DNA from: Zygnema circumcarinatum SAG 698-1b
Lineage: Eukaryota; Plantae; Zygnematophyceae
Direction: 5' to 3'
Length of the DNA stretch: 64,000 bases
NCBI GenBank assembly: GCA_037447605.1
Contig: CM074812.1
Location: 1 to 64,000 of the forward strand
The translations under genes and the position numbers were made by a program. Below are positions 321 to 60,336 of this stretch, piece after piece. The notes beneath the pieces are model-generated. The model worked only from the letters and a program-made list of their open reading frames with translations, searched no databases and had not been told where the DNA came from. Position 1 is the first letter of the stretch; each line of letters begins with the position of its first letter.

Positions 321-474
321 TTAGTCAGTCAGCGACTGGTGCAAATGGTCAGCCACGAAGCCTCGACCAGATGGTTAACCATATGGTCGAGGATTTTCGC
401 ACGCCTTGGCTGACTTTAGTCAGTCACCGCCTCGAGCAAATGGTTAACCACAAAGCCTCGACCAGATGGTTACC
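321..474. repeat. Imperfect ~95-bp direct duplication containing a 32-bp near-perfect palindrome
   Basis: ttagtcagtc...gcaaatggt...aagcctcgaccagatggtta occurs at 321-379 and again at 416-474. 361-392 (cctcgaccagatggttaaccatatggtcgagg) is self-complementary with one mismatch. Confidence 0.75.
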
Positions 475-1198
475 TTAAAAACCCTAAAACCTCTTTAGTG
501 ATTGGTCGCTTGGGTTGCCGCAGACTCTTATTGGTTTCTGATATTTGCGATGATGTTTGAATTCTGTCGAACTGTGCTGAATCATTACCAGCTCATTAGC
601 TTCAAAATGTTTCCAACAATATTTTGATAGGGATTCCGACAGGAAAAAGGTTTCAAATTTGATTATCTCACTAATTGTGACAGTTATCAGCAGAATTACA
701 CACAGATACGTTAGGGGAAAATGGCAACCGAACACATTTATTTGAACTTTAGAAGCTATTACATGACCAATTTGAGAGGAAAATGAAGAGCGCATGCACT
801 GGAGCAAAGCAACACGCCGCGCCGCAGTCTCCCTCCCTACCTCCCTGGCTCCACGCTCTCGGGTTGGCGGTGGTGGTGGTTCGGTGTGCGGAGCGAGGAC
901 GGGGATCATCCAACCGGCCACTGCGACCTGTCGGCACTCGGCTCCAAGGCTCACTGCTGTCTGCAAGCCCTCCGAAGTCCTCATGTCTAAGAGCAGCCAA
1001 AAATCGTTGACAGTTCTCCTACCTTTCCTCTTTCGTATTTGACAATAGGCGCATCAGAACCGTACACTTGCCCAGGTTGTTGTAACTGTGCAGCATCGAA
1101 ATCCTCGAGCGCCACAGTTTCGGGGTTTGGAAGCAGAACCCTTCGGTGTAAGGGGGTTCAGAAAAATTCTATAATGAACTCGACTTGAAAATAAAAAA

Positions 1199-1276
1199 GG
1201 GGGGGGAGGGAGGCAGGGAGGGATGGAGGGAGGGAGGGAGGGAGGAAAGGAGGATGGGAGGGGGGGGGGCGGGGGG
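1199..1276. repeat. G/A-rich low-complexity tract just downstream of the NRPS stop
   Basis: Runs of GGGA/GGAG and poly-G read directly from the sequence. Confidence 0.85.
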
Positions 1277-1302
1277 CTGGGCTGCACAGCTGGACATCTT
1301 GA

Positions 1303-4300
1303 TCATGAGTCGTCGGGGAGGGGCCTGGCAGCAGCACGGACGACATTGCAGTATTGAAACATCATGGCCTCCATCGTGGGCCGGTCGATGATGTCGGCTT
1401 GGTAGACCAGCCGCCCTCTCAGGCTCCCGTCCTGCTGCTCTCGCAGAATCAAACAGACGGGCGTCAGAGCCGCCTCGCCTTCCCGTGCCCACGATGCAGT
1501 CAGGTCGTATTCGGTGTGCGCCTCGCCCAGGTTGAAGCTATGTGGACTCGAATTTGTACCCGGCTGTAAAAAGTTGAAATAAGCTTGAATTAAATTAGAC
1601 TTGGCAAATTCTGGCCTCGTCAGAACCTCGCTCACAATGTGGCGGAGTGTGACAGATTGATTCTCCAGCGCTTCAAGCACCCTCTCTTTGACTTGATGGA
1701 GGACGTCCTTGAACGACAAACCCATTGCAGCATCTTTCGAGGGGTCAACGGCAGCTCGCAGAGTTGATGCAGTCTCCAACTGAGAATCGGACATAGGCTT
1801 GAAGTCAGCCACGATGGGCATGACGTCAGCCACATGCCCCAGCATCCCCTGATGCTCCCCCAGCGGCCTCCGTGCCATGAGTGTCCCCACAACAATGCGC
1901 CTCTGATTGCTCCAAATGTGAAGCAACGAATGGAAGGCAGCGAGCGCAGCCATGTTCAGGGTGGCCCCCACGCCGTGCGCCACTGCCTCGAGGGCGGACC
2001 TCACGTCCGAGTCGAGTGAGAAATCCAACCAGGCCCCTCTGCTGGGGATGGCCCCGCCGGTCTTGGGAGGGTGGGTGGCCTGTAGGCGCAGAGGCTCAGG
2101 GTTCCTTCCGATGGTTTTCACCCAATAGGCGAGCTCCGCCTTCTCTGCCCCACCGGCCAGCCACTCCTTCTCCCACGCCACATAGTCCGCATAGGTGGCA
2201 GCCGCTGGAAGGTTGTCGGTGGTCCCTGTACGATACACATGCTCCAGTTCTCTATAGAAAACTGCAGCTGAGATGCCGTCAAATATCAAATGGTTGAACA
2301 CGCACACAAGAAACACCTCGCCCTGGCACCCTCTAATCAGAGTCACTCTGAAAAGGAGCCCTTGTGCCGCCTTCATGTCGAACGGCCTCCTGGCAAAGTC
2401 TAGAGCTCGTCTCAGTTCCCATTTCTGCTCGTAGGGCGTTTTAGCGTGTGTGACATCCGCAGAGGCCAAGGTGAATGGAACAATTGTGTAGTCTTGGTCG
2501 ATCTGATCCACACATTTCGGCACAATCTTATGCATGTTGCGCAGGAAGACAGGCCCAAGAAATCCGGCTGCCATGGAGGCCACCCGCGCCCCCCCCGCGC
2601 TGCCCCCTCCTGGCGGCGGCCTTGCGGCCCACCGGTTGAGCACCGCCGCCATGACGGTGGACCCCACCCCGCCGTGCTCCGCCGAGAACCGCATTCTCAG
2701 GGCCTGGTGGCGCCGCTGCAGCTGCTGGACGGCGTCCTCCAGCCTGCGGGGGTCGATTGTGCCCTGCAATACGCTCGGCGGATACTTTACATCATCGCAC
2801 TGCTGCAAACCTTCGTGTGTTCGAAATTCTACTGACAGAGTTTGCGCAGGACAAAACCGCGAGATGATGGAGAATGAAGTCGGAAAAAAAATCATGGGAA
2901 GTCTCTCTAGCTGTAAAAAGCTGCGACTTTATGTTGCATGCTGAGCAATCCCTAGCCAACTTCAACACTCACGCAACTCACCCAGCCATCCACGTTACGT
3001 GCTTCACAAATGACAAGGTTTGAATGAGCACGCCCGTTTTTGTTGGCTCTGAAACTCTCCCACCACTCAGCTTTTTACGGTCTATATTCCCTTGTAAGAG
3101 GCAGAGAAACATACCTGCACTTTCCATACGTCGGAAATGTCCACCACCTCTGGATTGGGCAGAGTATGGGTCACCACCCACATGACTTCCTGCGCATGGG
3201 AGAGAGGGACATGCATGGCGACATGGTGGTGCGCTGTCACAGGCTCCTTCTCTTCCTCCTCCTCCCCGCCCAGATAGAGCTGCAGACCGACGCTGCCGCG
3301 CAGCGTGGCCCCTTCGCCGGCGTGCACGTGGAGGCCGTTGGAGACCTGCGCCTCCGCCGGACTGCTCTCCTTGAGCATCGCGCTGAGGCTGTACACGCGC
3401 TGCTGCCGCCTCTGCAGGTGCGCCTGCACGAGCTTCTGCTGTTGCCCGTCGCGGGTCAAGAAGGTTTCCTTCTGTTTCTGCTTCAGGATCTCTGCAACGG
3501 CTTCCGCGGTCGGCCTCTCAAAGAACTGCCGAATGGTGATGGAGGAGGGGGGCAGCGCGAATGCTTGGTGCAGATGCGCCACCGCTTGCGACGACAAAAA
3601 CGAATTGCCCCCAAGAGCAAAGAAATTGGAGTTTCGGAACACCTCTGAACCGTCCTTCAGCCCTAGCACGGTCGAGAAAACATGAGCCACCATGCGTTCC
3701 TCCTCGTTGATGCACTGCGCACCCTCCTCGGATGACCCAAAGCCTGACTGAAAGTTCTCCAGCGAGGGTTGGGGGAGCCGCTGCCTGTCCACCTTTCCCG
3801 AGCTGCGAATGGGCGAAAACATCAACATTGTCTCAGTTGTTTGTGAATCCCGCTATCCCTGTAGAGTGAGACATCTTCGTTTGGCCATCATGCGATGCGT
3901 CACATAGGCCGCACAGTCCGTTACCGGGCAGCTCGGCTCCAAAATAAGGGCCTCGACCAACAGTTGCGTCATTCGTGCAGTCTTAGATGGCATTGCTCAT
4001 CCACATCCCAAAGCTTGAAAAGGAGGCAGTTTTGTCAAGCCTCTGTGACAGGAATATGGTTGAACTGTGCCCTTTTTGACAGAGACCAAACAAGAAGGAC
4101 TCATTCAATCTGGACACGACAGGCTTGCTTTCGTACGACCTAACGTAAGGCAATGCACTCCTCTAACAGGCCCTGCACTCACACGGTGAGGGGCAGCTGG
4201 TCCATGAGCACATAGGCGGCGGGCATCATGTAGCTCGGTAGCTGTGCAGCTGCCACGGCCTGCACCTTTTGCAGAAGGCCTTCCCTGCTGAAGGAGCTGT

Positions 4301-7300
4301 GGGACATCATATAGGCTGCGAGGTAGGGCCGGCCAGGCTCATCCTCGCGCAAGATGACAACACATCGCGCCACGCCATCCACGCTGCTGATGTGCTTTTC
4401 AATCTCACCAGGCTCGACGCGATTGCCTCTAATTTTGATCTGCAGCAAAGACAAATGCGCATTTCTGACACATAATGAGCTTCCCTCCAGCAAGCACAGC
4501 CCAAAAGACAAACAGACTTCAGACAAAAGGATTAGCACCAAACCCGCACCAGAAATAGTCCAAAATTGCCTTGATGCACGTTCGTTTCTTCATTCAGGAA
4601 TACACTCTCGAACAAGTGTTCTACCAGTACATTATTGCGCACCTAAAGATAGGTACAAAAACAAGAATACGCAACCTTCATATTATTGACAACGAGTCTG
4701 GAGATCCGACTGGCTACTGCCAGTGTCTTGAGGCACGGGCAGGTGCACCTGAAAATCCACTCTTCCCAAGAATTGGACATTCCCGTCCTGCAGCCATCTG
4801 CCTCTGTCTCCTGTTTTGTAGACCACTCGGTCATGCCGACCAGTGCTGTACGGATTGGGCCTAAACGACCGAGAAGTCAAATCTGGTCGTTTCAGGTATC
4901 CCCGAGCCACGTGAATTCCAGAGATGCAAATCTCACCGGGAACTCCAATGGGCAGCAACTCCAAGTTGGGTCCTAAAACGTAAACCTGTGACCAAGAAAA
5001 GGAGCAAGCACCAATTTTGGCGGTTCGGTTTGGATGGAAGCAAGTTGAACTCCAAACGCTTTCGAGACTTTCAAAAGCGAACAGGCAAAGCGATGTGATG
5101 GTCCCCAGCAGAAGCAATCCCTAGAAAAACGAAATGAATCAGGGTAGACTTTCATCTTCAAGTCTCAAGAGTCACTAGCAGGGAGCGAACAACTCCAGGG
5201 CTGATGGTAGGCAGGCATGATTTTACAAAGAGTATGATTCGATATCCGCTTACAGGGAAGCAGAGTAGTGGTTACAATATGCTGTGGGTTTCGTAAAGTC
5301 TGGGTGTTAAATGAAGCTTATGGGAGCGAGTAACGCGAGGTGCTACAGTATGTAGTCCCTTACATGAGCGCCATCCAGCGGCCGTCCGATATGGTCGGCC
5401 ACGTCATCGGCCGGCCGCCACAGCTGGCAGGTCACTGCAATGGCGCACTCGGTCGGGCCGTAATGCTCGATGACAGTGCGGCCTGCGCAGGGAAGAGCCC
5501 TCTGCTGCTGTCTGTCAGCCGCTCTTCAGAAGGGCCACTGGACTACACATCACGCATCCTTTCATTCGGCGTGTAATCATAAAAAACATTGTTGCGCATT
5601 AGATGAAGACCCGCAATGAACAGAAACCGACTTCACTGCAGTTGAGCAAACATGTTGGACATTACCTGCATTTATCCATTTCTTCAAAAGAACTCGCGGA
5701 ACCGTCTCGCCAGCAAGTGCCAGCCATCTCAGCGAAGGCACATCGTCGGGGTTCAGCAGCGAAGCAACTGTTGGAGTCAGGACCACTCCAGTCACTTGAT
5801 GATGTCGAATAAATCCTTGCAAATCTGTTAACAACTCATCCTTGCTGCAGATTACCAATGTCCCTCCGGCGTCGAAAGTGCAATAGACATCCATAGCATG
5901 CAAATCAAAGGTCATTGCAGAGAGCTGTCCGCGAATGTCAGGGGTTTCGCGTGGAAATACATCGCGAAAAGCATTAACCAAGTTCCGCACTCCTTGATGC
6001 TCCGCAACCACTCCCCTGCCAGAGGAAAGGAAGATCCAGATGCGGCCCGATTGATGAGTGGATGGATGCCCTTTCTCAAAGAAAGAGATCGAACTAAAGA
6101 AAATGAACGACCACAAAGTGACAAGGCCAGAAATATCCGTTGAACTGTGCAAAGCGCACTATACAGACGTAGAGCAAACGTGTTCCATATCTTTCTCTCA
6201 CATACATTAGTCAAAAGGACTGGCACTCCCACTGCCACAATGAGTTTCCTCAGAGCAGCACAGTGCCAGGATGATGAAGGAAAAACAGTGACTGAAGCAG
6301 CTCAACGGCACACCCGCCTGCTGCCAAAGTAGTGACTGAGTCCTTACTTTGGTTCCCCGGTTGAGCCACTAGTAAATAGGACATAACAAACGTCAGAGCC
6401 GGACGGTCTCCTTTCCTCAAGTATCTTCATATCCACACTGTTGCCCTTCTGATCCTCCACGAGCAACACTCGAGCTTTGCCTTCACTTTCCAGCCAGCTG
6501 AACTGATGGATGCTATCGACCGTAGAAAAGATAACCTTCAGCCCTGCCTGGTCCACCAGTTTTTCAATACGAGCCCTGGGGAATGCTGGATCCAGTGGGC
6601 AGTAGCCCATGCCAGCCATAAGCACCCCTGCCATAGCTACGACCCATTCGTGGCCTCTTTCTAATCCTAACCCTATCAGCTCCGGCTGGTCAGTTGGCAA
6701 ACTCTGATTTTTCGCACCACATGTTGTGAAGAGTGCAGAAGCAACCTCTCGTGCTCGGTTATACAGCTCCAAGTATGTCAATGAGCGCCTGCTATCGATC
6801 ACAGCAACAGCATCCGGGTTCCTTCGCGCTTGTCGTTCCAAAATGTCAACCAAGGTATCACCGTGCGCTTGCCTGTCAGAAGCTGTCGGCACAGCGCGCT
6901 TGCTGAACCGGTCTAGCACTGCTAGCTTCTCTTGTTCGGTCAGCAACGGCAGCAGGTAAATGGGCATCTCTGCAGCTCCTGACACTTTCAGAGATTCCAA
7001 CATATGAACATAGTTATGTGCGAGGCGAGTCATGGATTCTTCGTCGTACAACTCTGATTTATACTCAAATTGAGTGCTAATAGAGCCATCTCTGCCAGGG
7101 GAAAGGCGTAAAAATATTTCGAACCGTTGTCTGTCTGTCTCTCGTCGTGACGCACTCGCTGGAGAACCGCAAAATTCAAAACCAGCACTGCAGGAGTTTT
7201 CTGCAGGATCAACAGCTCCAGGAAATGCAGCTTCTACACGAGCCAGAACTTGTGAGAAAGTGACGCTCTTTTCTGACTTCACGTCATCGTGCTGGACGCT

Positions 7301-7684
7301 TCCATTGACAGGGTTCCCATTACTTTCACGGGCGGCGGAGTCGCAATGAAAGCTCACAGTGATGCTTGCTATGGTATTCTCCGCTTCCGCAGAAGGAGCG
7401 CTTCGCCCGTCACCCTGTGCGTGGATCACACCGTTCTGATCCGCTCTTCGCGGCTTCCCACTCGGTAGCCCTACTTTGACGGAACCAGTAGTAGGGTTGT
7501 ACCGATACAGCAAACAGTGATAGGCTGCTAAAAAAACAGATACCAACTTAGCATCTGCAAATTGTGGTCCAGTACTTATCGCAGTAACCGTTGCCTCCTT
7601 CAGCTTGCAGGATACCAAGCCTGGCGCCCTCTCTTGCTCTGAGTCAGAGACGCAAGTAGGCGGCGGAAGCTCCAGGATCCCCAT
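1303..7684 (-). CDS. Non-ribosomal peptide synthetase, single module: truncated C (C-lobe only) - A - T(PCP) - terminal C; 7 coding exons, 1482 aa
   Basis: Exons 7684-6348, 6015-5666, 5482-5364, 4985-4749, 4439-4183, 3802-3115 and 2763-1303 all have GT-AG boundaries and sum to 4449 nt in frame. A-domain cores: LTYLEL, YVLFTSGSTGEPKG, TFD, HYGPTE, GEICISG...ARGY, YKTGDRGRW, GRVDFQIKIRGNRVEPGEIE, LPSYMMP, LPLTVSGKVDR. T domain: FFALGGNS (Ser at 3603-3601). C domain: LSHAQ..W, RHQALRMRF, RPFD, NHLIFDG (2295-2275), LAYW, FHSLL..W...IVVG. An in-frame TAA lies just upstream of the ATG at 7684. Confidence 0.95.
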
Positions 7685-7699
7685 CCCCTGCTCACAGCT

Positions 7700-8358
7700 C
7701 AAACCTTACCCTTCCCGCGACACCTGCACTCGTTTCCCAAAGGGAATATTCAGGTGCACGAGCTAAGAAAGACAGGTTTCACCAAGAGAGGAACAAAGAG
7801 ATGCGAGAGCGCGCGCACTAATCCGCACAGCAGACGCTCCGCCGGTCTTGAAACGGAGACGGAGGAGCAACGCAGGGCAGGCTGGCGCGCGCGCGGTTCC
7901 AAGCTTGCGAGAGGAAGGGAGAGGATCAGGCCCTGGCCCCGGCCCCGGCCCCGGCCTGCGGCGCGAGAGGAGGGCGAGGGCGCGCGTCCATGGCCGTCGG
8001 TCTCCTCCTCACTGTGCGTGCGTGCCTGCGTGCGAGCGTACCCGGCGCGGTCCTTCCGCGCGCCTTCCGCCGCCCGGCCTGCTCGTTCCTTCCTTCCAGG
8101 CCTGCCCGCTCGCCGGGGCAGCGCCGAAAGGGTTGCCGCAGGCCCGCGACGGCGGCCGGGCAGGGCTCCCGAAACCTTTTCGTCTACCCGCGCTTCGCCA
8201 AACAGTCCCTCGGGGCGCCACGCGGACGCTACGTGGCGGCCGGGCCGACGCGGAGGCCGCACCGTACCGTACGTCGGCCCTCTCTCCCTCGACCCGTCCG
8301 AGCGGGGACAGAGAGAGGGAGCGGGAGCGGGAGCGGGAGCGGGAGCGTGTAGAGAGCC
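7700..8358. promoter_or_regulatory. GC/CpG-rich bidirectional promoter and 5'UTR region shared by NRPS (-) and CPQ (+)
   Basis: GC-rich island between divergent genes, with tandem CCGTAC at 8262-8272 and (GGGAGC)n at 8317-8346. Every other gene start in the window also lies in or beside a similar island. Confidence 0.6.
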
Positions 8359-8711: not shown

Positions 8712-15403
<6,692 letters not shown>

Positions 15404-40194: not shown

Positions 40195-40597
40195 GGGAGC
40201 GAGGTGGCGAAGGGAGGCGGGCGCAAGCGGTGCAATGCGCAGGCGGCAGGGGCCGAGGCGCTAGCGGCGGCAGCAGCAGCGGCAGGCTCCGGGCGGGGGT
40301 CGAGGGGCCATAGCCATCAACACAGCCACAGCCATAGCCATAGCGCGACTGCACCTGCACCTGCACCTGCACCTGCACCTGCACCTGCACGTCCGCCATA
40401 TGGCGTATCGTATTGTATGTATCGTATCTCATATATCGTATCGTATCGTGCTGAGGGCCGCGAGTACATTAGCTCTCGTGGGTGAGGTCAGAAAGTTTGT
40501 GGTGACGTCAGCAGGTTGCCAACCCAACCCGCTGACGAGTCTGCCTGCCTGCCTGTCTGCCTGCCTGCGGGGCGGGGCAGGGCGGGGCAGGGCAGCC

Positions 40598-43500
40598 ATG
40601 GAGGCGGGGGGGGGGGCGAGGCAGCGGCTGGCGCAGCTCCTGGAGCCGGCCTCGGTGGCCCTCGTGGCCACGGCCGTGCTGGTGGTGCTGGCCTCCGCCT
40701 TCCGCGCGCTCAACCAGCAGAGAGAGGCCGAGCGCAACCGCGAATTCTCCGAGGCCTCCATTACGCTGGACGGCTCGCAGGCCCTCTTCATCCCGGTCGC
40801 GAGCTCCTGCAGCCTCCTGCTCATGTTCTACCTCTTCTCCACCATCTCGCAGCTGCTCACTATCTTCGTCTCTGTCGCTTCCGCTTCATCTATCGCTTTC
40901 TGCCTCTCTCCTTACTCCACTTTTCTCGCTACGAAGCTTGTCGGCCATGGCGGCTCCTCTTCTCGCTTCTGTTGTTGTAGCAGCAGTACGAGCTCAAGAA
41001 TGCAGGCCCTCCTTTTCTTGCTCAGCGCAACTATTGTTGCAGCATGGCTAGTTTCAGGGCACTGGGTGCTGAACAACATTCTTGGAATATCTATCTGTAT
41101 CGCCTTCGTCAGCCATGTCCGCCTTCCAAATATTCGAATATGCACTATTTTGCTCGGGTGCCTTTTCTTGTACGATGTTTTCTGGGTCTTCTTTTCAGAA
41201 CGCTTCTTTGGAGCCAATGTTATGGTGACAGTCGCCACGCAGCAGGCGAAGAATCCAATGCACACTGTTGCGCAACATTTGCAATTGCCAGTATCGCAGA
41301 CTATTACTAAAAAATTGGACCTTCCGGTGAAGCTGCTCTTTCCAAGGAACCTCCTTCTGAGTCGCGAGGCTTCGAATAGAGACGACGCGGCGGATTTTAT
41401 GATGCTGGGATTGGGTGATATGGTGAGTAAGGCTTGAAATTGTGCCTTTTGTGACTTTTTTTCTGTTTTGGATGCAGGCTTAGGTGGAGGTTACACTTAC
41501 TCTCACTGGTGGATAAGGAAACGTGTTTGGTTCTTGGACTGGTTTGAATAGTTGTGAATTTACTACCATTTCAGCGCTGTAGGAATATTGAGGAATATTT
41601 TTATTCCAGCAGCGGATTGAAACAACTTACATTGGACATCCTTGTGAACGTTTATCACGTCATTTTGCAAGGCTTTCGCTAGTGCAAACTTGTATATATA
41701 CAGTTGCATACTGTATATTCCAAAAAGTACCCGTTACATTATGATAACGTACTGGAAATCTTGGGTTATTGCACAAAGAGGAGGCTTATTTTGGAGAATG
41801 CGGAGTGTCTTCCTTTGCTAGTAGTCCCTTTTCCCGTCAATATGTACATGATTGTAAAGTTAATGAATGACAAGCATGTATGTTGTTGATTCAAAATAAT
41901 CGTTAAGCAGTAGGGTTGCCATTCAGGACGTGGACCAGGGGTTGGACATTCTTCACAAGCAAAAAAAATGTAGGCCAGTTTCGTTTTGTTGCTTGGTTAG
42001 TCAAGTCGGTTTGGGTGCAGTTTGGTTAGATAAGTTTCATTGGGTATTCATTGGGCTTCAGTATTTGAGTCACGCTCCCTATCTGAAAACTTGGAGGCCT
42101 TATGCCTGCACCATCACTTAGCGTTGAGTGAACCTGTCCACTATGCTCTTCCTTGTTGAAAACCTCGGGTTTGTGCAGCAAACTTTGACAGCAAAGATGA
42201 AGCTAGTGAATCTTGTTCGAATGTTGGTCTTGTATGGCAGAAAAATTTCGGTTGTATCGAGTGAGTGGTATCGAGCTTCATGGGAAAACTCTCAGCCATG
42301 TTTCGCTTGTCTATTAAACATGTGCTCCATGGCAAGTGCTTCCTTGAAAGGTCAGTTGGCCAAGTATGCAAATAACATAACATCAAAAGTAATGTCTGAT
42401 ACTTTAGATTCACGTTGTAACTCGTTAGCTTTTTCTTCACATACGCCCGGGGGTCACATTTCTGGTATTGCGTAATGTGGGTTGATTGGCAATGCATACA
42501 GTGAGATGGGGAACCTTTCAGGGTGTGCGAAAGTCACGTGAATGAATTTTTATGTGAGGCTGAGGACTAGCAATGGAGGAGTTTGTATATCAATCTGCTG
42601 TGAGTCGCTGAGGCGACATACGAGATTTGGCCCTTTGTTTGTGTCATTGCGTTTCTTTGACCAACAAACTGCAGGATGACAATTTGTCCTTACTCCTTCC
42701 AGATGAGCTCGCTAATGGGGAACGAATTCCCCCTAGTTGTTGATTGGATGTTTTTGTTTACTGTTTCCCACACGGAGAGAATCCGCAGCTGCATGTTTCA
42801 TGCTGAGTTGGCGATTCTTGCTTCCGGAGTCTGTCCCACATCGTCGCCCGGAAGATGTCATCTTCTCCTGGCCCTTTCATGAGCAGTTTCTGTTGCAAAG
42901 AACAAATGAAGTATAGATAATCTTCCTGCCTTTGGCCATTTTTAAGATAATTTATTTTCCCTTAATTTTTACAGTGAATTTCCCTCTGTGTTCTTCCTCC
43001 TCAAGGCATCCCTTCTAAATTTGTCTCTCCAACTGAATTGGAACTGCAGGCGATTCCAGGGATGCTGCTTGCATTAGTCCTATGCTTTGACCATCGCAAG
43101 GTGCGAGACTACAATGATATGGACCCAATGTCAGTAGGGCGGAAGGCTCCCGCCAGCAAAAACTACATATGGCATGCTGCTGCTGGCTACATGGTTGGCT
43201 TAATTCTAGCACTGGCGGTGGGTGTACTGACAAGGGCGCCTCAGCCAGCTCTGCTCTACCTGGTGAGGACACCTAACGTCTTGAAAAAGGACATTCTCGG
43301 GCTCATCCTTCTTTCTCTCGTTCTTTCCTCCAGTAGTCCCCCCTACCCCATCCCGTCCCTTCTGTTCCTGACCTTGGCAAATCCTCGTCTTCCCCTCCTC
43401 CATCTCTGTTTTCCTTCTCCCGGTTCCCTCCTTCCATCCCCCAAGTCTCTTCCCTTCCTCCCTCCCGATTTTCAATCTTTCTGCTCTCTCACTTCCTCCC

Positions 43501-48411: not shown

Positions 48412-51400
48412 CTAGAGGAAGCGTTGGCCGTGCGCATCTCGCTCTACAGCACCCCTTCTCACAACCATCCCCTGAAATCGTTTCTTTGGCTCCGAATCAT
48501 CCTCATATGCACGCAATACGAGGTTCACCAGCTTCCCACTTTCAAACTCTACGAAGGCACTACAACCCTTAAGCTGCTTCACTCTGCTGACGAAGCTTGC
48601 ATTCGGCTTTCCCAGCTCTTCACGCAGCACCTTATCAAACACAGTCCGGACCTGGACTTCATCCAGAGGCTGCGGAATATTTGCGGCATAAACGCACCTC
48701 TCTCTGTCTAATCTCACGAAACCGTCTTTCGATCCCTCCCCTTCAATTTCAACACGCGGTCGACTCCACAATGATTCCCTGCCCGAGGCCCTGCGAGGAG
48801 CCTCCTCCGCATATTGGCCATTGAATTCACGCTCGTCCTCGAGCTTCCTCTTGTCGGATGGGTGCGAACTACCATGGAGCGGGTAGTCCCCTTCATCACT
48901 ATTTGCCATACCTCTGTCCCCGTCCTTATGGTAGCGGTCACTAGAATAAGCTCGTTGCTCCCGGGAATCACGCCAAGAGCGGCCTTCGGGCCGTCGCTGC
49001 CGAGGTTCTTTGTGTGCTGTGTACTCAGCAACATCAAACTTGGAGCCTTTATGAGGCTTGACCTCCATGCCCTTAAATGCTGCCGGATTCTTCTTGTACA
49101 ACTCCAAAACCCTCATTGTCAATCGTTGCGATGGAAGAGCAATGAAAGCACAGTATGGCCGAACTCGCCGGACCTCACCCACGACATCACCTCCAACAGC
49201 TGTATCAAGATCTGCTGGGCTCACATTATCCAACAGAACTCTTTTGACGATAAACCCTATGGCAGAATCCGTCATATCCTCTTGCAGCCTTTGTACATAC
49301 ACAGTCCTGTTGGGTTCCAGTCTCGCTTTATAATGAAACGGCTTTTCAACCCGGGGTTCTTCCTTCCAGCTTGTTGGCCCTTCATGTCTGCTTCCAGAAG
49401 TTCCTTTCCTGAGAGACTTGGATCTCCCACCAGTGTCTAACAACCATCCATTGCTTGCTTCAATACCTGCAGCTTTTTTTTCCAGCTTGGGCAACATGCC
49501 ACTAAACACCTGAGGGTCACGTTCATAAATGGCCAGAGCTCGATCCGCAAGTTCTGGGGTGGGCAGATACACCCACGCTGTTTCTGCTAATTTCTCGTAC
49601 CTCACTGTGGAAATCAACTTCCCCATCGTTAGCTTCCTTGCACGCGATTTCTCCACACTTGTTGCGTGAATTTGAAGGGCTTCATGAAATATGTTGTAAA
49701 TTTTATCGACCGTGACAGTTTCTGGAAGCTCGCTAACGGCCAAAACAGTCACTCCCACGTCTGTTGGAAGAATGTCTCCTCCAGGCCCAAGCTGTACTGA
49801 CAATCCCTGGAAGACATCCGGCTCCATGGCCAGGAGCTCGACACAGGCCCCTGCCAGCTGCTCATGTGCAAGCTCCACCACGCAGAGAAAGCGATCAAGC
49901 TGCGTCACGCTTAACACCATATTTTCACTCTCCAACAACCCTTTTGGGACCTCAAGACGTTCCGTGAGTACCGAGTCAAAAAGAGACTTCACCAGCTCTT
50001 CAGATAGATTGGTTTCATCTACCTCCCCGCATGTCACGTGCAATATGCGAGTTGTCGGAATGTCTGAAATGGGTGCTTCTACAATATCTGCAGCTTCTTG
50101 TGTGACCTCCGGTGCTTTTGTAGCTATGGAAGATGGCTCTGCAAAAGCTGCCTGCGGTTTCTCTTGTGTTGGCGGACTTCTCGAGCGGCGCATCCTCTTT
50201 GCAGGATGTCGCTCTGGAGAGCCACCAGCCTTTGGTTCTGAGTGGGGTGAAGACGCCCTTTTCTGTGGAGCAAGTGGTTTACTATCTATGGGCAAAGCTA
50301 CCTTCTGATCGCCCAAATGGGCGGGCAACTCTGCCCCTTTCGTGAAGTAGTCTGCCGTATCATCCAGCAGTTGCTTCACTAGCCTCTCAGCTGCAAACAG
50401 AGATGCCAAATTTATGGCCCGCAACCTCACGACAATGCGCACAATGCTACCGGAACTGAAGTTCCTGTCCTCGGTAATGCTTCCTTTCCGCTTTTCCTCC
50501 TCTGATGGACCGCTTTTAGCTTGAGCCAATTTGAGCATAACTCCCGTCTCTTCCTCGATCTTCTCAAAATTGATGCGGTCCTCACCAGCCACCTTCCTCG
50601 CCACCTCTTTCACTGACGGTCCACTTTCGGCCGGATGGCGACTAAGTGGTCCTTCATAAGCAAGCCGTCTACTACACAAGCCTCGCGTCGCAATGGAGCG
50701 CAAGAAATCGGCAGCTACGTTCACAAACCACTTGGTCTCGAAAGCTTTCCAGCCTTCTTCTATCCGCTTCGAAAGGATGGCATGCACCGCATCTGAGCCC
50801 TCACATGCAGTCAAATGTAGGCAGAGTGAACTCATATGTCTACAGTAGACCTGCAGATGAATAACATGACTTGGAAAATTTGCAAACTTGGCCGGTCGTA
50901 GTGGTCAAATCAATATGAAAATCCGTCACCATAGCATATATGCATTACAAGTTCGATAAGGAAAAGACAAGCCCAATTGGCGTAAATTTGAAGTACAGTT
51001 GGATTGACATCTCCCTCACAGCCCGTTGTGCATACTCTCATGTCACTACTAAGTCGAACCCAGCCTCTTTTCATCATAATCTCCCGTCTTCAGAATATTG
51101 TAAGCGCATCATCAGCAGCATAACGCCTCAGCCAAATTATATAAAATCCTCAGTAAGGAGCGTGAGGGTGTGAAACACATGCACAGCCTGCAAACAACCT
51201 TTATCTGAGTGCTGAGGTACAAAATGACTGCAAAAAATGAACAACCAAGGCTCTGGAGCTCTCACCTTGGCCACCTCCTTCCTTGGCTGCCACCTCCTTA
51301 CAGACAATGGAGACACCTGTCATATCCCAACCCATGATGCGCCACTCACACTAAGAGAAAGGCAGTAAAATGTCTTCACGTGCCACATTTATCACTCTGA

Positions 51401-54400
51401 AGTGAAGTTGCAGACCTCGATAAACCACCATGTAGAAACAGGAATTAACTCGCATACACTTTGCATACAGCTCCCAAGAAAGACCGATGGTCTAAAGTTT
51501 TGAAAATCGAATAAACGGACAGAAGCTGTTTCCAAATCTCACCAAACTCTTCTGTGAAAAACTTCATGCAGTGTTTGGAGAGCAGCCATGGTCGAGTGTC
51601 GACCGTGTCCACCTCGTGTAGCCCTACTTTGAGTATACATTCATCATCCTCCACGACTAAATCCTCCGAGCTTGCAGAATCTACAAGAAACTTCACTGGA
51701 GTGGAAGTTCCAGCCATTAAAGCAGAAACGTTTTCTGCCTGACCATGCTTGGGATCGGATTGTTGTTTAATATGTGAAACTGCATCCCATACACCTCGGT
51801 CTTACCCTCAGTCAAACTGAAACTGCATCTCTTCAAATTCTTGGACCTGGCTCCCACATCTAGGTCTTGTATTTAGATAACCTTACGGAAGTACTGAGCA
51901 TTCTCTGCTTTGTGTTTGTCCAGAAATCTGTTACAACTAAGATCGATAAGACTATCCTTATCCTCATTCTTATCCTTATCCACAACATTAGATTTGGCTT
52001 TCAAAGTTATGACTCCTCTGGCCTGTTCCTTACTAACGTTCGCAATTTACCAGTTTGTTCATTCCCTACTCTCCCCCTTTCAATATCCTTTTTTCCTTGG
52101 ATCCCTCCACCTCCCTGAAACCCAAATCTTTCTCGGTTTTACCAGACTGCCTCAATTTATTTGGTGTCTCTCCCGAAATCTCTTCACGTAATTCTCTTTT
52201 GGTGTAGTCTGTTTTCAACAGTTTCATAATTTTCTGGTTCTAAACCTCCACAAGCATATGCAACCCGAATCTCACATTCTGGATTGGGGTACCGATGCAC
52301 AACGTGTGTCTCACTGGCCTTGGCCTTCACATCGTCATCACCTCGGTCTCCCATCTCCATCTCTGAGAACTTCACTGTCCCTCTGTCGGCTTCGTTTCGT
52401 TTGATACCATCCGGATGCATTCTCAATCGCCTTTTGAAATCTTCCACCACTTTACCGTCTACTGCTGTCGACATGGCCACCTCAGGTTGCACGACTTCAC
52501 GAGCACATCGCTGCGCTGTAGCATACACCCTGCATCACACCCACTTTGCTAAAAAGTTCGGAAATGAATGCAAACAACGTCCTTCAAACAAACGTCACAA
52601 TTTTGGATAAAGAGTAAATTGACAGCCTAACCGATTCTCCCTCAAAAAACAGGAAAGACACATCCTCTGAGGATTCAAATGCTGAAACAGGCTGACAACT
52701 CGTTACATTAAATTCGCCCTAGTGTGCTCTCGAACAGAGTCATCACTGAGGTTCGTATATGCTCTGTTTCAGTTCATGCAGAGTATACGCATGCTGACCC
52801 ACTGTCCTCTGCTTTTTTTGATACAAAAATACGATGCTTTTGCCAAACTTCTTGAGCGCCAATCCTAATCCTCAAGAGACCCTTTCAGTCTAATCATTTT
52901 CTTTATGTGGTTTCAAAGCATACAGTATTGCGCACCTAGATGATAAGGAGTCTGACGGCTGGGCTGCTCCGGCGCCCAAGCAATCCATGAGCTTAGCGAC
53001 AGCCTGAGCGTCAAAAGCTCCAATTCAGTAGGCGTTCAATTTTGCCAGTTTCCATGCAGAAACAGGACTTACAGCTGTTCCTAACTGAATAAGGACCTTG
53101 ACACCATGCTGCAATCCAATCAAAAGCAAAAAAGGTGCACAATAATGAAGGAGTAATAAGACTCTAATCCACAGGTCAACGGCCGTTGCTCAATATTTTG
53201 ATTCCTCCAGAATTGGCGGATGGATATGGGCATTATACCGTGAGCACGTTGATGCGATCTTCAGCAGTCACCGAAGCACTGGACAGGAGTTGATTGATTG
53301 TCTTCAATGCCTCTAATGTCACATTCAAATAACTGTCCCTGTCCTCTCTCTCGGTGCCTGGAACAGCCACAGCAGTACTGCTTACATCCCAAGAGGGCAA
53401 AAACTCGGCCCATTGAAGGAGGCAATTCAATGTGGACGTTATCTCAGCAGTTGGTAACTGATTAGTGCTGTTGGTAAGCAAATGCCTGCAGAAAAGGAAC
53501 CCCATGCAAGAAAATTAGTTGTCACGAGCCGCAAACGTGAAGGTTGGACTGCCAGCTGGCTGTAACTTAGTCAAAGCTGTGCAAACTCAATTGAATCTCG
53601 TATTCGCCTGCCAAATTCAAAAACCTGCCTGCACAATGATTCCTGGCAGTTCGAAGGTTGGTAAAGAGCATAGTACATAACTTCTAAGACGCCAACTGTC
53701 CACCAGCATTTTCTCGTTTCTGTCACACAAATGCCTGGATAGGACTCACCTGATGGCATGCACAGCCGCTTTTTGAGCTTTAAATGACAAAATGGGCATT
53801 GAGGTCATGCGATTATTGTGTGGCTGTGGGCCGGGTGCCAAGGCGCGAAGTAGTGGCAGCACAGCCGCCAGCTGAGGGCCAGTAAGCACAAGCGTCCTGT
53901 GAATGCAAAGCTCGGTGATCTGCACACGCCAATTTAACACTTTTGCTAGTGTTTCCAGAAGAAAAACTTTCCAAGCAGAAATGGCCGAAAGTAGTCTCTC
54001 CTTACTACTACTAAGGGATACAGTGCACATGCAGAAACGATACTGCATTGAGACTGTGCAGGGTCGATAGCAGATACAACACGTTTCAAGCTGTTTGTAA
54101 GCCAAAACCAGCGCAAAGTTGTTGGATTTCTTTTGGATGTATACAAAGACGTTAATTCTTCGAAAGGTGAAAACCAATACGCATTCAGGCGTATAGTGTT
54201 TCGGTTTGCTTTTCATACTATAAATGATGTGACGATCGAAACGGCGTATTGCCACAAAGAATCCTGAACTTACCAGCTTGCAAGTATTAAGGGACAACTC
54301 GTCTTGATGAGACTCCTCCCCTTTGATAGCCCCTCCAACAGCAATCGTAATGGCCTCTACTAGTTTCAAAATGTCTGCAGCAACCTGCAGTCATCTCAAC

Positions 54401-54863
54401 ACACTGCTAACGTGTCTTATCAAACTAATCAAACAAAAGCTTTTGTCCAGAATCAACTCAACTAGGCTCGAAATTCTGCAGAGACTTCCGTCTAGTGCCC
54501 ATAAACCCAATTCTGCAATCTCCTGAATTTACAACAAATAATATTGGCCAAGCGTGCAAATGGAACACATGGTAAGCGACCCCAAAAAACCCTACAATCT
54601 TGACCTATATTCCATACGCAAATTAACCAGCAGCCTGGAAGCCTCAGCGCAGCCATCTACACAATCGCCAGTCGCACCTCTTGCGGAGGAATCTTGGATG
54701 CGTTGAGAGCGCAGTCCGAGAAGTCCTTTAACGCGGCAGTAATTGCGTGCAGACGCCCTTCGCTGCTCGCTGGCGGCCTGCTCAGAATGTGCGCGGCCCT
54801 TCGCCACGCCTCGGCGGCGGTCCCTCTCCTTCCGCGGCCCTCATCCTTGAGAGGAGTCGCCAT
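48412..54863 (-). CDS. Putative chimeric RNA-binding protein (~1290 aa): HEATR6-like N-terminal helical region + degenerate tandem KH (KHDC4/RIK-like) + four RRM-like repeats
   Basis: An in-frame splice path exists: 54863-54678, 54384-54274, ~53920-53752, ~53488-53241, ~53109-53074, ~53004-52937, ~52532-52270/52310, 51779-51460, 51316-51266, 50850-48412. No GC-rich promoter island lies between these exons. Domain calls rest on motif similarity (see findings). Confidence 0.7.
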
Positions 54864-55673
54864 GCGAATGCGCGGGCCGGCAGGCGGCTGCCACAGGCCC
54901 TCCCTCCCTCCCTCCGCTGCAAACTGTGCCTTCCGGGAAGGCCCTTCCCTCAATTCCTTCCCTCTCCCTCTCCCTCTCCCTCCCTCGCCCGTCCGTACGC
55001 TCTGTTCCGTACGGGTGTCGTACGGCAGTCCCTTCAAGGGGGCACTGCGGAGGGCCGGCTCGTGTTGGCGACGGCGGCCTTCGCGGAGGGCTGTGAGCGC
55101 GGGCGGACTTGGGTGGGGAGGGAGGGAGGGCGGGAGGGAGGCCCTCCCTCGACTCTTAAATCAGGCTCGTGTGAGGCTGTCTGTCCGGGGGGGGTGAGGG
55201 AGGGCATTGCACCGACATTGGGAATTGTCGCTCTGCTCATGCATGCATTCATCCATCTCATACAGAGAGGCGCGATTTGGCACAACGGAGGGGTGCCCGA
55301 AAACACAAGAGCAAAGTGTCTTATTCAGAAGGGTACAAAGGCTGAAAGTGCCATTTGGAAGCCCCCGTGAACGAAGGCCTTTAAAGAGGAAGCCGGCCAG
55401 GTCACGGAGCGCTCTGGAAAAGATTTACACTTGCACGCGCTCCCCCGGCCAAGGCCCTCCCTCTGTGCTCACTGCCTGGGAGGCTCCGTCCAAAATTCCG
55501 CTTTCTCAAAAGGTGCTCACTCCATCTGGCCGCCGAACTCCGTGCTCGCAGTCCCCGCCCTGCCTGGGGTGCTGCGGGTCCTCACCCTGCGCTTGGGTGT
55601 GCCCCACTGCGGCACATTTGTGAACGTCGTTAAGGACAGTCTGTGGGTGCTTCAGACGGTTGGTTCATCGCGT

Positions 55674-58600: not shown

Positions 58601-59316
58601 TAATGCTCCAATAAAAAAACGAAGTTGAATTGGTCGTGACTTTTAAGGCTTTAACTAGTTTCAAGAAGTGGAAATGACAGTAGAGAGAAGGGAAGAGGAA
58701 AGCTTTCTAAAATTGCAAAAAAATCTTTAAGGTCTCGTCCGACAGGCGTCTTCTCCAGGCCTTGGACGTCCCGTGTGCCAACTTTCTCCATTTCCCTCTC
58801 GTGTTCCAATTCTTATCTCCTTTCCCCTCCAGCCCCTCTCGCTTCCCTGCTCCTCTCTCCTCTCGCACTTTTAAACTGAAAGCTACGTACCACTCGTTCG
58901 TCTGCGCCCGGGACGCCCTCCACGATCTTGATTCTCGACCGCGTCTCTTCACACATCTTCTTCACGAACTCGCCCCTCCTCCCAATTATGCTTCCCACCT
59001 TGTGCATTGGCACTATGAGCCGGAACACGCTCTCCCCGGGCCATCCCGGCCACTTCCGCGCGCCAGAGCCCGGACTGGAGTCGCTGTCCTCCAGCGGCCG
59101 CTTCTGCCCGCCGCCTCCTTCCGGCGGCTCAGTCGACAGCCCCGGCACGGGCGTCGTGTTCCCTGAGCCTGACAGCTGTCCTGCGCCAACTTCCGAGTTG
59201 GGGCCATCTATGGCATCCTCCTCAAAGCTCTCCATGAGAGGAACCTCTGCGGGGGGAGGGATGGAGAGAGGCATGGGGAGAGGCATGGCGAGGCCCTCGT
59301 CGCCCTCGGCCGCCAT
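55674..59316 (-). CDS. FLK: FLK/PEPPER-family triple-KH RNA-binding protein; 6 exons
   Basis: [42 protein letters not shown] (KH1); [33 protein letters not shown] (KH2); [12 protein letters not shown]; [28 protein letters not shown] (KH3); ends ...YPNTYGY*. FLK versus PEP orthology is not resolved. Confidence 0.93.
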
Positions 59317-60336
59317 GGCTGCGAGCGGGCGAGCGGGCGGGCGGGCGAGAGATGCCTTGCGCGGGCGAGCGCGGGAGGGAGAGGGAGCGCGGAGCGCGGA
59401 GCGCGGCGAGAGGCCGTCGGATGCGGCATCGGACGGCTTGGCGCTGCAGCAGCAGGGGTTGTATCGACTACGGTATCGATAAAAATATCGTATCGGATGG
59501 CGAGTCGGACCACCACTTTTTGGGGCAACGGGGCTGGAGACTTTCAAAAAAACGAAACGAAAAAAAAAGGAGACACGAGCAAAGTGCACGCAATAATGCC
59601 ATCCAACTCCGATGCTTTGCAAAACGCAAAAATTAAGGGGCCCATCATACAGGCCCAAGATCTCTAGATCCATTTCTGGCTCTGCCGCTGCCATGGGGTA
59701 CCCCCTGCAACACATCGGCACCACCCTCCCTCTTGCCCGCCGGAGGGACCCCCAAGCACGCCATGGCCGCAAGCATCTCGCACAGCCCCTACTCGCACAG
59801 CGCATTATCTCATTCATCTCACGGCCGCTACTGGGTTTCCAATGCGGACGCGGAGGTAGAGCCTGAGGGGGGCGCAGAGGTGGCCTCAACATTCCTCCTT
59901 AGGCCGCCTGTAGGGCTGCCCGCCATGTCGTCTGCATCCTTGCAATTCAACAACTTGGCCACCTTCTGCACGCCCCCTCCAGTACCACCCTACGGATGGG
60001 CGCATGCAAACGTGGTGTCTGCACCCCGCTTGGCCTGGCTGCTGGCTACAGCCGCCCGGCCCCTCTACTAGCTTGACAACAACAACATGGAGGTACATGT
60101 GATCACTGCGACGAGATTGGCACAACAGTGAGGAAGGAAGGAAGGCCCTCCGCCGCATCGCCACAGATCATGTGCGAGCGCTTTCCAAGGGTTAGGGCCG
60201 TCCTTGCAGTTAGCTAAGAACGGCGTTGTCGCAGGAACAAATTCAGATACAAGGGCATAATTTTGAATTCAGAGAGGATAATACACTCGAGGGACCCTAT
60301 GGAAGGAGAGGTTTGAGGTCTTGCAGGAGCGTCCTA

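Follow-up and report, generated by a model that had tools for sequence, protein, structure and literature searches.

The 64,000-nucleotide stretch of Zygnema circumcarinatum SAG 698-1b analysed here (contig CM074812.1, positions 1–64,000; hereafter the window) carries on its minus strand, at 48412–54863, one expressed nine-exon gene. The gene is part of a small, uncharacterised streptophyte family with a core of two KH domains and four RRM domains, and its architecture is unusual, not unique. Prior to splicing, the region (48412–54863, minus strand) shows only short open stretches followed by an open reading frame (ORF) of 807 codons. RNA contigs from four public runs of Z. circumcarinatum (X1–X4), all at least 99% alike, were placed on positions 49600–55200 of the window and define the following gene model:

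48412–54863, minus strand: complete coding region from ATG to stop, nine exons, 1,234 residues (RNA junctions and a single open frame once spliced)
54678–54863, minus strand: exon 1, coding part from ATG 54863 (junction 54678/54384 in X1, X3 and X4)
54274–54384, minus strand: exon 2 (RNA junctions, splice sites)
53750–53919, minus strand: exon 3 (RNA junctions, splice sites)
53239–53485, minus strand: exon 4 (RNA junctions, splice sites)
53073–53108, minus strand: 36-nt micro-exon of an earlier reading, HGVKVLIQLGTA, in frame with good splice sites, unused in the RNA seen
52936–53003, minus strand: exon 5 (junction 53239/53003 in all four runs, bypassing the micro-exon)
52276–52529, minus strand: exon 6, last part of the helical domain and beginning of linker 1 (RNA junctions)
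51543–51779, minus strand: exon 7, linker 1 and first half of KH1 (junction 52276/51779 in all four runs)
51266–51316, minus strand: exon 8, 51 nt, KH1 strand 2 and variable loop (RNA junctions)
50793–50850, minus strand: additional 58 nt from a minor alternative acceptor at 50850 (run X2 only, depth 25 versus 38 for the major form)
48412–50792, minus strand: exon 9, coding part with the end of KH1, KH2, RRM1–4 and the stop codon (acceptor 50792, the major one, used in every run)

On the minus strand the contigs establish eight junctions of the GT..AG type (54678/54384, 54274/53919, 53750/53485, 53239/53003, 52936/52529, 52276/51779, 51543/51316 and 51266/50792). Seven of these recur in every run; the one between exons 1 and 2 is seen in three. 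The introns are 226–496 nt long and none of the eight has a GC donor. The first five junctions, spanning exons 1–6, lie together on one 883-nt contig from run X1. When the exons are joined by script, a single frame stays open for 1,234 codons, starting at ATG 54863 and ending at the TAG at 48412–48414, and no alternative in-frame ATG is found among the codons upstream of 54863. An arrangement of two ORFs on one mRNA, with a TAATG stop–start overlap in exon 7, was considered and is ruled out by this continuous frame. The exon 6–7 junction (52276/51779) has a depth similar to that of its neighbours and spans an intron with hardly any coverage in X1 and X3; it joins the N-terminal part to the KH–RRM part.

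These junctions and this frame confirm the single in-frame splice path from 54863, with its coordinates, that had been drawn in an earlier, sequence-only reading of the window. The link across 52.3–50.8 kb, which that reading had named as the check on a single mRNA, is provided by the exon 6–7 junction. The micro-exon that it had placed in the path is skipped by the RNA contigs, and its 12 residues are missing from both orthologues described below (P0002 and P0004). The last exon, which it had begun at acceptor 50850, starts in the RNA at 50792; use of 50850 would include the peptide LCLHLTACEG, but breaks the frame and leads to a stop after three codons. Of the peptides that it had quoted, this one is absent from the 1,234-residue protein and all the others are present.

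Just upstream of the ATG, at 54906–55180, one X2 contig jumps from 54906 to approximately 55151 between two GAGGGAGGGCCT repeats. This jump within a purine-rich repeat could reflect variation in length, a collapsed assembly or an event in the 5′ untranslated region. An Rfam search of the window for structured RNAs gave no match.

The protein consists of an N-terminal helical domain, a pair of KH domains and four RRM domains joined by linkers, laid out as follows:

52457–54821, minus strand: ARM/HEAT-like α-solenoid, residues 15–285, exons 1–6
50683–51645, minus strand: KH1, residues 391–478, split over exons 7–9 (βααββα; predicted local distance difference test score, pLDDT, >90 in the orthologue model)
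50329–50679, minus strand: KH2, residues 480–596, KHDC4/BBP type (AlphaFold model of the window sequence; PF22675 E 0.055; 2yqr as top PDB match)
50053–50328, minus strand: disordered basic linker with KRMRRSRSP (pLDDT <50; motif conserved in P0004)
49783–50052, minus strand: RRM1, residues 689–778, aromatic residues of the ribonucleoprotein (RNP) motifs lost (predicted fold; 77% identity to P0004)
49477–49752, minus strand: RRM2, residues 789–880, RNP2 aromatic residue lost (predicted fold, identity, motifs)
49051–49311, minus strand: RRM3, residues 936–1022, RNP-like motifs VYV and CAFIAL kept, followed by a conserved KPH-containing helix (predicted fold, motifs)
48448–48702, minus strand: RRM4, residues 1139–1223, RNP-like VYA and SAFVEF

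In the AlphaFold model of residues 1–880 of the orthologue P0004 the N-terminal domain forms a solenoid of 10 helices with pLDDT 60–88. Pfam gives no match for this region in the exon ORFs of the window, in residues 1–290 of P0002 or in the whole of P0004, and a word-based homologue search with the N-terminus returned the query itself only. Its look-alikes in the ESM Atlas are FIRRM, LINES, HEATR5A, SYO1 and MMS19. A search of the Swiss-Prot part of the AlphaFold Database (AFDB) with the model of the N-terminus plus KH domains matched mainly solenoids followed by a disordered tail, with root mean squared deviations (r.m.s.d.) of 29–56 Å, and gives no useful information. The sequence-only reading had likened this domain to HEATR6, a protein of roughly 1,180 residues whose Pfam model is HEATR6/DUF4042. 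HEATR6 is absent from the Pfam, homologue search, Atlas, AFDB Swiss-Prot and PDB results, no structural match places it above other solenoids, and the identity is not supported. What the two share is the fold class, an α-helical HEAT/ARM-like repeat; no sequence, profile, language-model or structure match connects them, and the window domain is only about 270 residues long. The N-terminus is best described as a generic ARM/HEAT-like helical repeat.

The following two domains have the βααββα topology of type I KH domains, seen for KH2 in the model of the window sequence and for both domains in that of the orthologue (pLDDT >90). The ten nearest ESM Atlas clusters for this region are all KH families. 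PF22675 (KH-I_KHDC4-BBP) is the best Pfam family for KH2 and is matched at E ≤1 by 13 of 15 family members, with a best E of 1.1e-6, estimated as just under the gathering threshold of 30 bits. When a family profile of KH2 is compared with PDB sequences the top match is the KH domain of KHDC4 (KIAA0907; pdb 2yqr) with E 0.02. This domain is the closest solved relative of KH2 by both profile and structure, by a narrow margin over other KH domains. The earlier description of a KHDC4/BLOM7/RIK-like pair thus holds for the tandem type I fold and for KHDC4 as the best look-alike of KH2; the scores stay below the threshold for family membership. A second gene for a KH protein lies on the same strand approximately 4 kb upstream (58813–59892, minus strand); its 359-residue ORF includes a canonical KH_1 domain (E 7e-9).

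The AlphaFold model of the last exon, built with an alignment of 18 rows, contains KH2 and four βαββαβ domains with pLDDT 84–96, separated by disordered linkers. The protein appears to be arranged as beads on a string (predicted template modelling score 0.30). The four repeats, which had been noticed from the sequence, can be aligned with each other, and each has the β1-α1-β2-β3-α2-β4 order of the RRM superfamily. Comparing family RRM profiles with PDB sequences gives nucleolin (E 8e-6) and also LARP7, PABP and RRM1 of U2AF65. Foldseek searches of the PDB, ESM Atlas and AFDB clusters return multi-RRM proteins only (Raver1, Prp24, NONO, U2AF65, SHARP and HuR), and RRM4 superposes on the RNA-binding RRM1 of U2AF65 at 2.5 Å. 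As for the likeness to U2AF65 proposed earlier, the RRM folds and the place of U2AF65 as best look-alike stand; membership of the U2AF65 (U2AF2) family, judged by an arginine/serine (RS) domain, U2AF ligand motif, RRM1–RRM2 pair and C-terminal U2AF homology motif and by sequence orthology, was not found. KHDC4 and U2AF65 are the best available look-alikes, with other KH and RRM domains close behind. The multi-RRM splicing factors Prp24, Raver1, NONO/SFPQ and PTB are, with U2AF65, among the nearest known systems. The KRMRRSRSP patch in the linker before RRM1 is a possible nuclear localization signal or RS-like site, from which a nuclear role is inferred. Other proteins that combine both domain types, such as IGF2BP/IMP/ZBP1 (two RRM and four KH domains) and the protist KH plus RRM proteins of the ESM Atlas, differ in having the opposite order and numbers of domains and no helical head, and sequence homology to them was not detected.

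An HMMER search (phmmer, single sequence) of 1.84 billion cluster representatives recovered 16 relatives, with E from 2e-228 to 3e-12 for 15 proteins. The closest is P0004, of 1,487 residues, which is 52–54% identical across the entire core and is encoded by an uninterrupted ORF at 339–4802 of a transcript-like contig of 5,341 nt. The last exon, used as the query of a word-based search, gave a single transcriptome protein, P0001, whose cluster includes the isoform P0002, of 1,483 residues (Trinity). Every part of the window protein, namely the N-terminal domain, the linker, both KH domains and the four repeats, is present in P0002 and P0004. In the N-terminal domain the identity to P0004 is 31% (E 2e-29), and the match to P0002 has a z of 10.8 over shuffles. 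That the architecture resides in one ORF is thereby confirmed in other species by two independent transcript assemblies. The sequence-only reading knew of no protein with this architecture; complete parallels do exist, and the family that they reveal is an uncharacterised one.

The remaining relatives are from Marchantia, Selaginella, Diphasiastrum, Ceratopteris, Pteridium and further assemblies. The land-plant members (Marchantia polymorpha Mp4g15960 = PTQ37949, BBN08963; Selaginella XP_024536646; Diphasiastrum KAJ7557272; Ceratopteris KAH6558806; Pteridium EP00250_P017849) share with the window protein the same colinear KH1-KH2-RRM1-4 core (25–42% identity per domain, E 1e-20 to 1e-51; alignment A2), including the motifs TR.WL.SK, PSV..V..K..GED, CAFV, F.GM.V and the KPH tail that follows RRM3. 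Identities per domain are 53–77% to P0004 and 20–42% to land plants, and those of the linkers 11–36%; the folded domains are conserved across the family and the linkers variable. In the tree, a window clade (window protein, P0004 and P0002) stands apart from a clade of land-plant members, and both are supported at 100/100. The land-plant members differ in having a GEDG loop in KH2, RNP aromatic residues in all four RRMs (Y/F in β1 and CAFV in β3) and N-termini of their own. The N-terminal helical domain has no counterpart in the liverwort, lycophyte and fern relatives, whose N-termini are unrelated to it. In P0007, P0008, P0011 and P0012 these comprise 200–900 residues with MFDLNELPE and PFWQGKL motifs and long stretches rich in Arg, Asp, Glu and Lys; Pfam assigns no domain to these N-termini, apart from a faint SPOC match in Selaginella (E 0.23). 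It seems that the solenoid is replaced in the land-plant relatives by a different recruitment module. No seed-plant member was found at E ≤0.001 in the one single-sequence search.

The most probable reading, in which we have reasonable confidence, is that this single expressed nine-exon gene encodes a 1,234-residue modular solenoid-KH-KH-RRMx4 protein of the uncharacterised family, which is restricted to streptophytes, with a likely role as a nuclear, multivalent RNA-binding scaffold. From the N-terminus it comprises the ARM/HEAT-like solenoid of about 270 residues, a disordered linker, the tandem type I KH domains, a basic linker and four family-specific RRMs with disordered charged linkers; the solenoid is carried by the window clade, with other N-termini in the liverwort, lycophyte and fern members. 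RNA binding is proposed for RRM3 and RRM4, since their RNP aromatic residues in β1 and β3 are kept, and may be aided by KH2. The solenoid, KH1, RRM1 and RRM2 may serve as protein-docking or non-canonical surfaces. For KH1, RRM1 and RRM2 this is proposed because they are best conserved despite having lost the canonical RNA-contact motifs; RRM1 and RRM2 are the best conserved domains within the window clade (66–77% identity to P0004). The nearest structural relatives, KHDC4 and SF1 for the KH domains and U2AF65 for the RRMs, are all pre-mRNA splicing factors, which favours a role in nuclear RNA processing, possibly of pre-mRNA, as a lead only.

Several observations weigh against this reading. 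The first concern the transcript. The last exon is deeper than those upstream, at 428 versus approximately 87–146 in X1 (up to 5-fold) and 1.3–2-fold in the other runs, and P0001 (isoform i5 of the relative) contains only the part from Met680 onward, that is, the linker and four RRMs with the solenoid and KH domains missing. Shorter transcripts may coexist with the full-length mRNA; P0001 hints at regulated short forms, and such forms could explain the higher depth of the last exon in the window gene. The single mRNA itself is built from chained short contigs and orthologue transcripts rather than one long read. The N-terminus and KH1 were studied through orthologues, the model being of P0004 and not of the window sequence. 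Others concern RNA contact. A GxxG loop is found in neither KH1 nor KH2 of the window protein, P0004 or P0002: KH1 has LSKH in its place, within the motif TRPWLLSKHC common to the family, and KH2 has GEDR in the window protein and P0004 and GEER in P0002. The aromatic residues in β1 and β3 are lost from RRM1 and largely lost from RRM2. With these motifs degenerate, a large part of the protein may lack RNA binding. At the profile level the window protein scores 13.8 bits (E 0.055) against PF22675, for which the threshold is 30 bits, and has no match to Pfam RRM_1 at E ≤1; the homologous land-plant members reach 22.8–33.6 bits against an RRM_1 threshold of 20.7. Finally, a literature search by accession and locus tag found no paper on the named family members, all of which are annotated as ‘hypothetical’ or ‘uncharacterized’.

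The loss of contact motifs is what gives weight to the view that the protein is mainly a protein–protein scaffold of degenerate (‘pseudo’) RNA-binding domains, in which RNA binding has become minor or been lost in the window clade. KH1 and KH2 have LSKH and GEDR in place of GxxG, where land-plant KH2 has GEDG; RRM1 and RRM2 lack the aromatic residues kept in land plants, yet are strongly conserved towards P0004; and the window clade has gained an ARM/HEAT docking domain. The RNP-like motifs of RRM3 and RRM4, the superposition of RRM4 on an RNA-binding domain and the basic, RS-like linkers typical of RNA-processing factors argue against it, and we regard it as unlikely, though deserving serious consideration.

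A bolder version of the RNA-binding scaffold, which we hold to be rather improbable, would make the protein a streptophyte-specific RNA-processing factor. With an SF1/KHDC4-type KH domain and U2AF65-type RRMs in the same chain, a single polypeptide would combine branch-site-like with pyrimidine-tract-like reading. The N-terminal recruitment module would have been swapped, the ARM/HEAT solenoid belonging to the algal-type clade and a different module to land plants, and the family would have been lost before seed plants arose.

The gene could also be seen as an enlarged KHDC4/RIK orthologue with added RRMs and a helical head, which would act with the Prp19 complex. The match of KH2 to PF22675 and its closeness to the KHDC4 KH domain speak for this. 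All PF22675 scores are, however, below threshold, for SF1/BBP as for KHDC4 and its plant counterpart RIK, the GxxG loops of the window protein are degenerate, KH1 has no sequence-level link to KHDC4, and the exhaustive HMMER search contains no KHDC4/RIK protein at E ≤0.001. The groups to which the named land-plant members belong presumably have a separate RIK gene. KHDC4 has two KH domains, no RRMs and no helical head, and the window protein has both added. Blom7, with its two KH domains, binds Prp19 (PMC2781463), which counts in favour of such an origin; on balance it is very doubtful.

Least credible of all is that the reader, or read-through transcription, has joined two separate genes, one for the helical repeat (exons 1–6; a HEATR6 fragment in the sequence-only reading) and one for the KH–RRM part (exons 7–9): the deeper last exon, the RRM-only P0001 and the lack of a window-type N-terminus in land-plant relatives are outweighed by the exon 6–7 junction in all four runs at ordinary depth, the nearly empty intron 6, the open frame across the junction and the two orthologue assemblies with all parts in one ORF, on which the two-gene model is rejected.

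Elsewhere in the window, the following were observed:

1303–7702, minus strand: a non-ribosomal peptide synthetase-like gene, unusual in a streptophyte genome and possibly horizontally acquired, whose long ORFs match the Pfam families Condensation (E 4e-47) and AMP-binding (E 3e-30)
approximately 10000–12300, plus strand: more than 2 kb of nearly pure C+T, strongly skewed (GC −0.93 to −0.99, AT about −0.95)
9697–11988: a 763-codon ‘ORF’ that is probably merely the C+T tract
40400–41437, plus strand: exon of signal peptide peptidase-like 1 (SPPL1), 64–69% identical to land-plant and Mesotaenium SPPL1, which marks the genome as that of a streptophyte

The analysis defines a conserved, expressed and uncharacterised plant-lineage RNA-binding family and supplies a corrected gene model for its Zygnema member. 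As known so far, the family includes a liverwort, lycophytes and ferns, together with the window protein, P0002 and P0004, which carry a different N-terminal module. Lineage-restricted regulators of this type are candidates for RNA-processing functions that changed in land-plant evolution, and the core family is open to knockout in Marchantia, a tractable system. In the window clade a docking domain has been gained and the RNA-contact motifs of KH1, KH2, RRM1 and RRM2 have eroded, while the same domains are strongly conserved. This pattern represents a testable case of repurposed RNA-binding domains.

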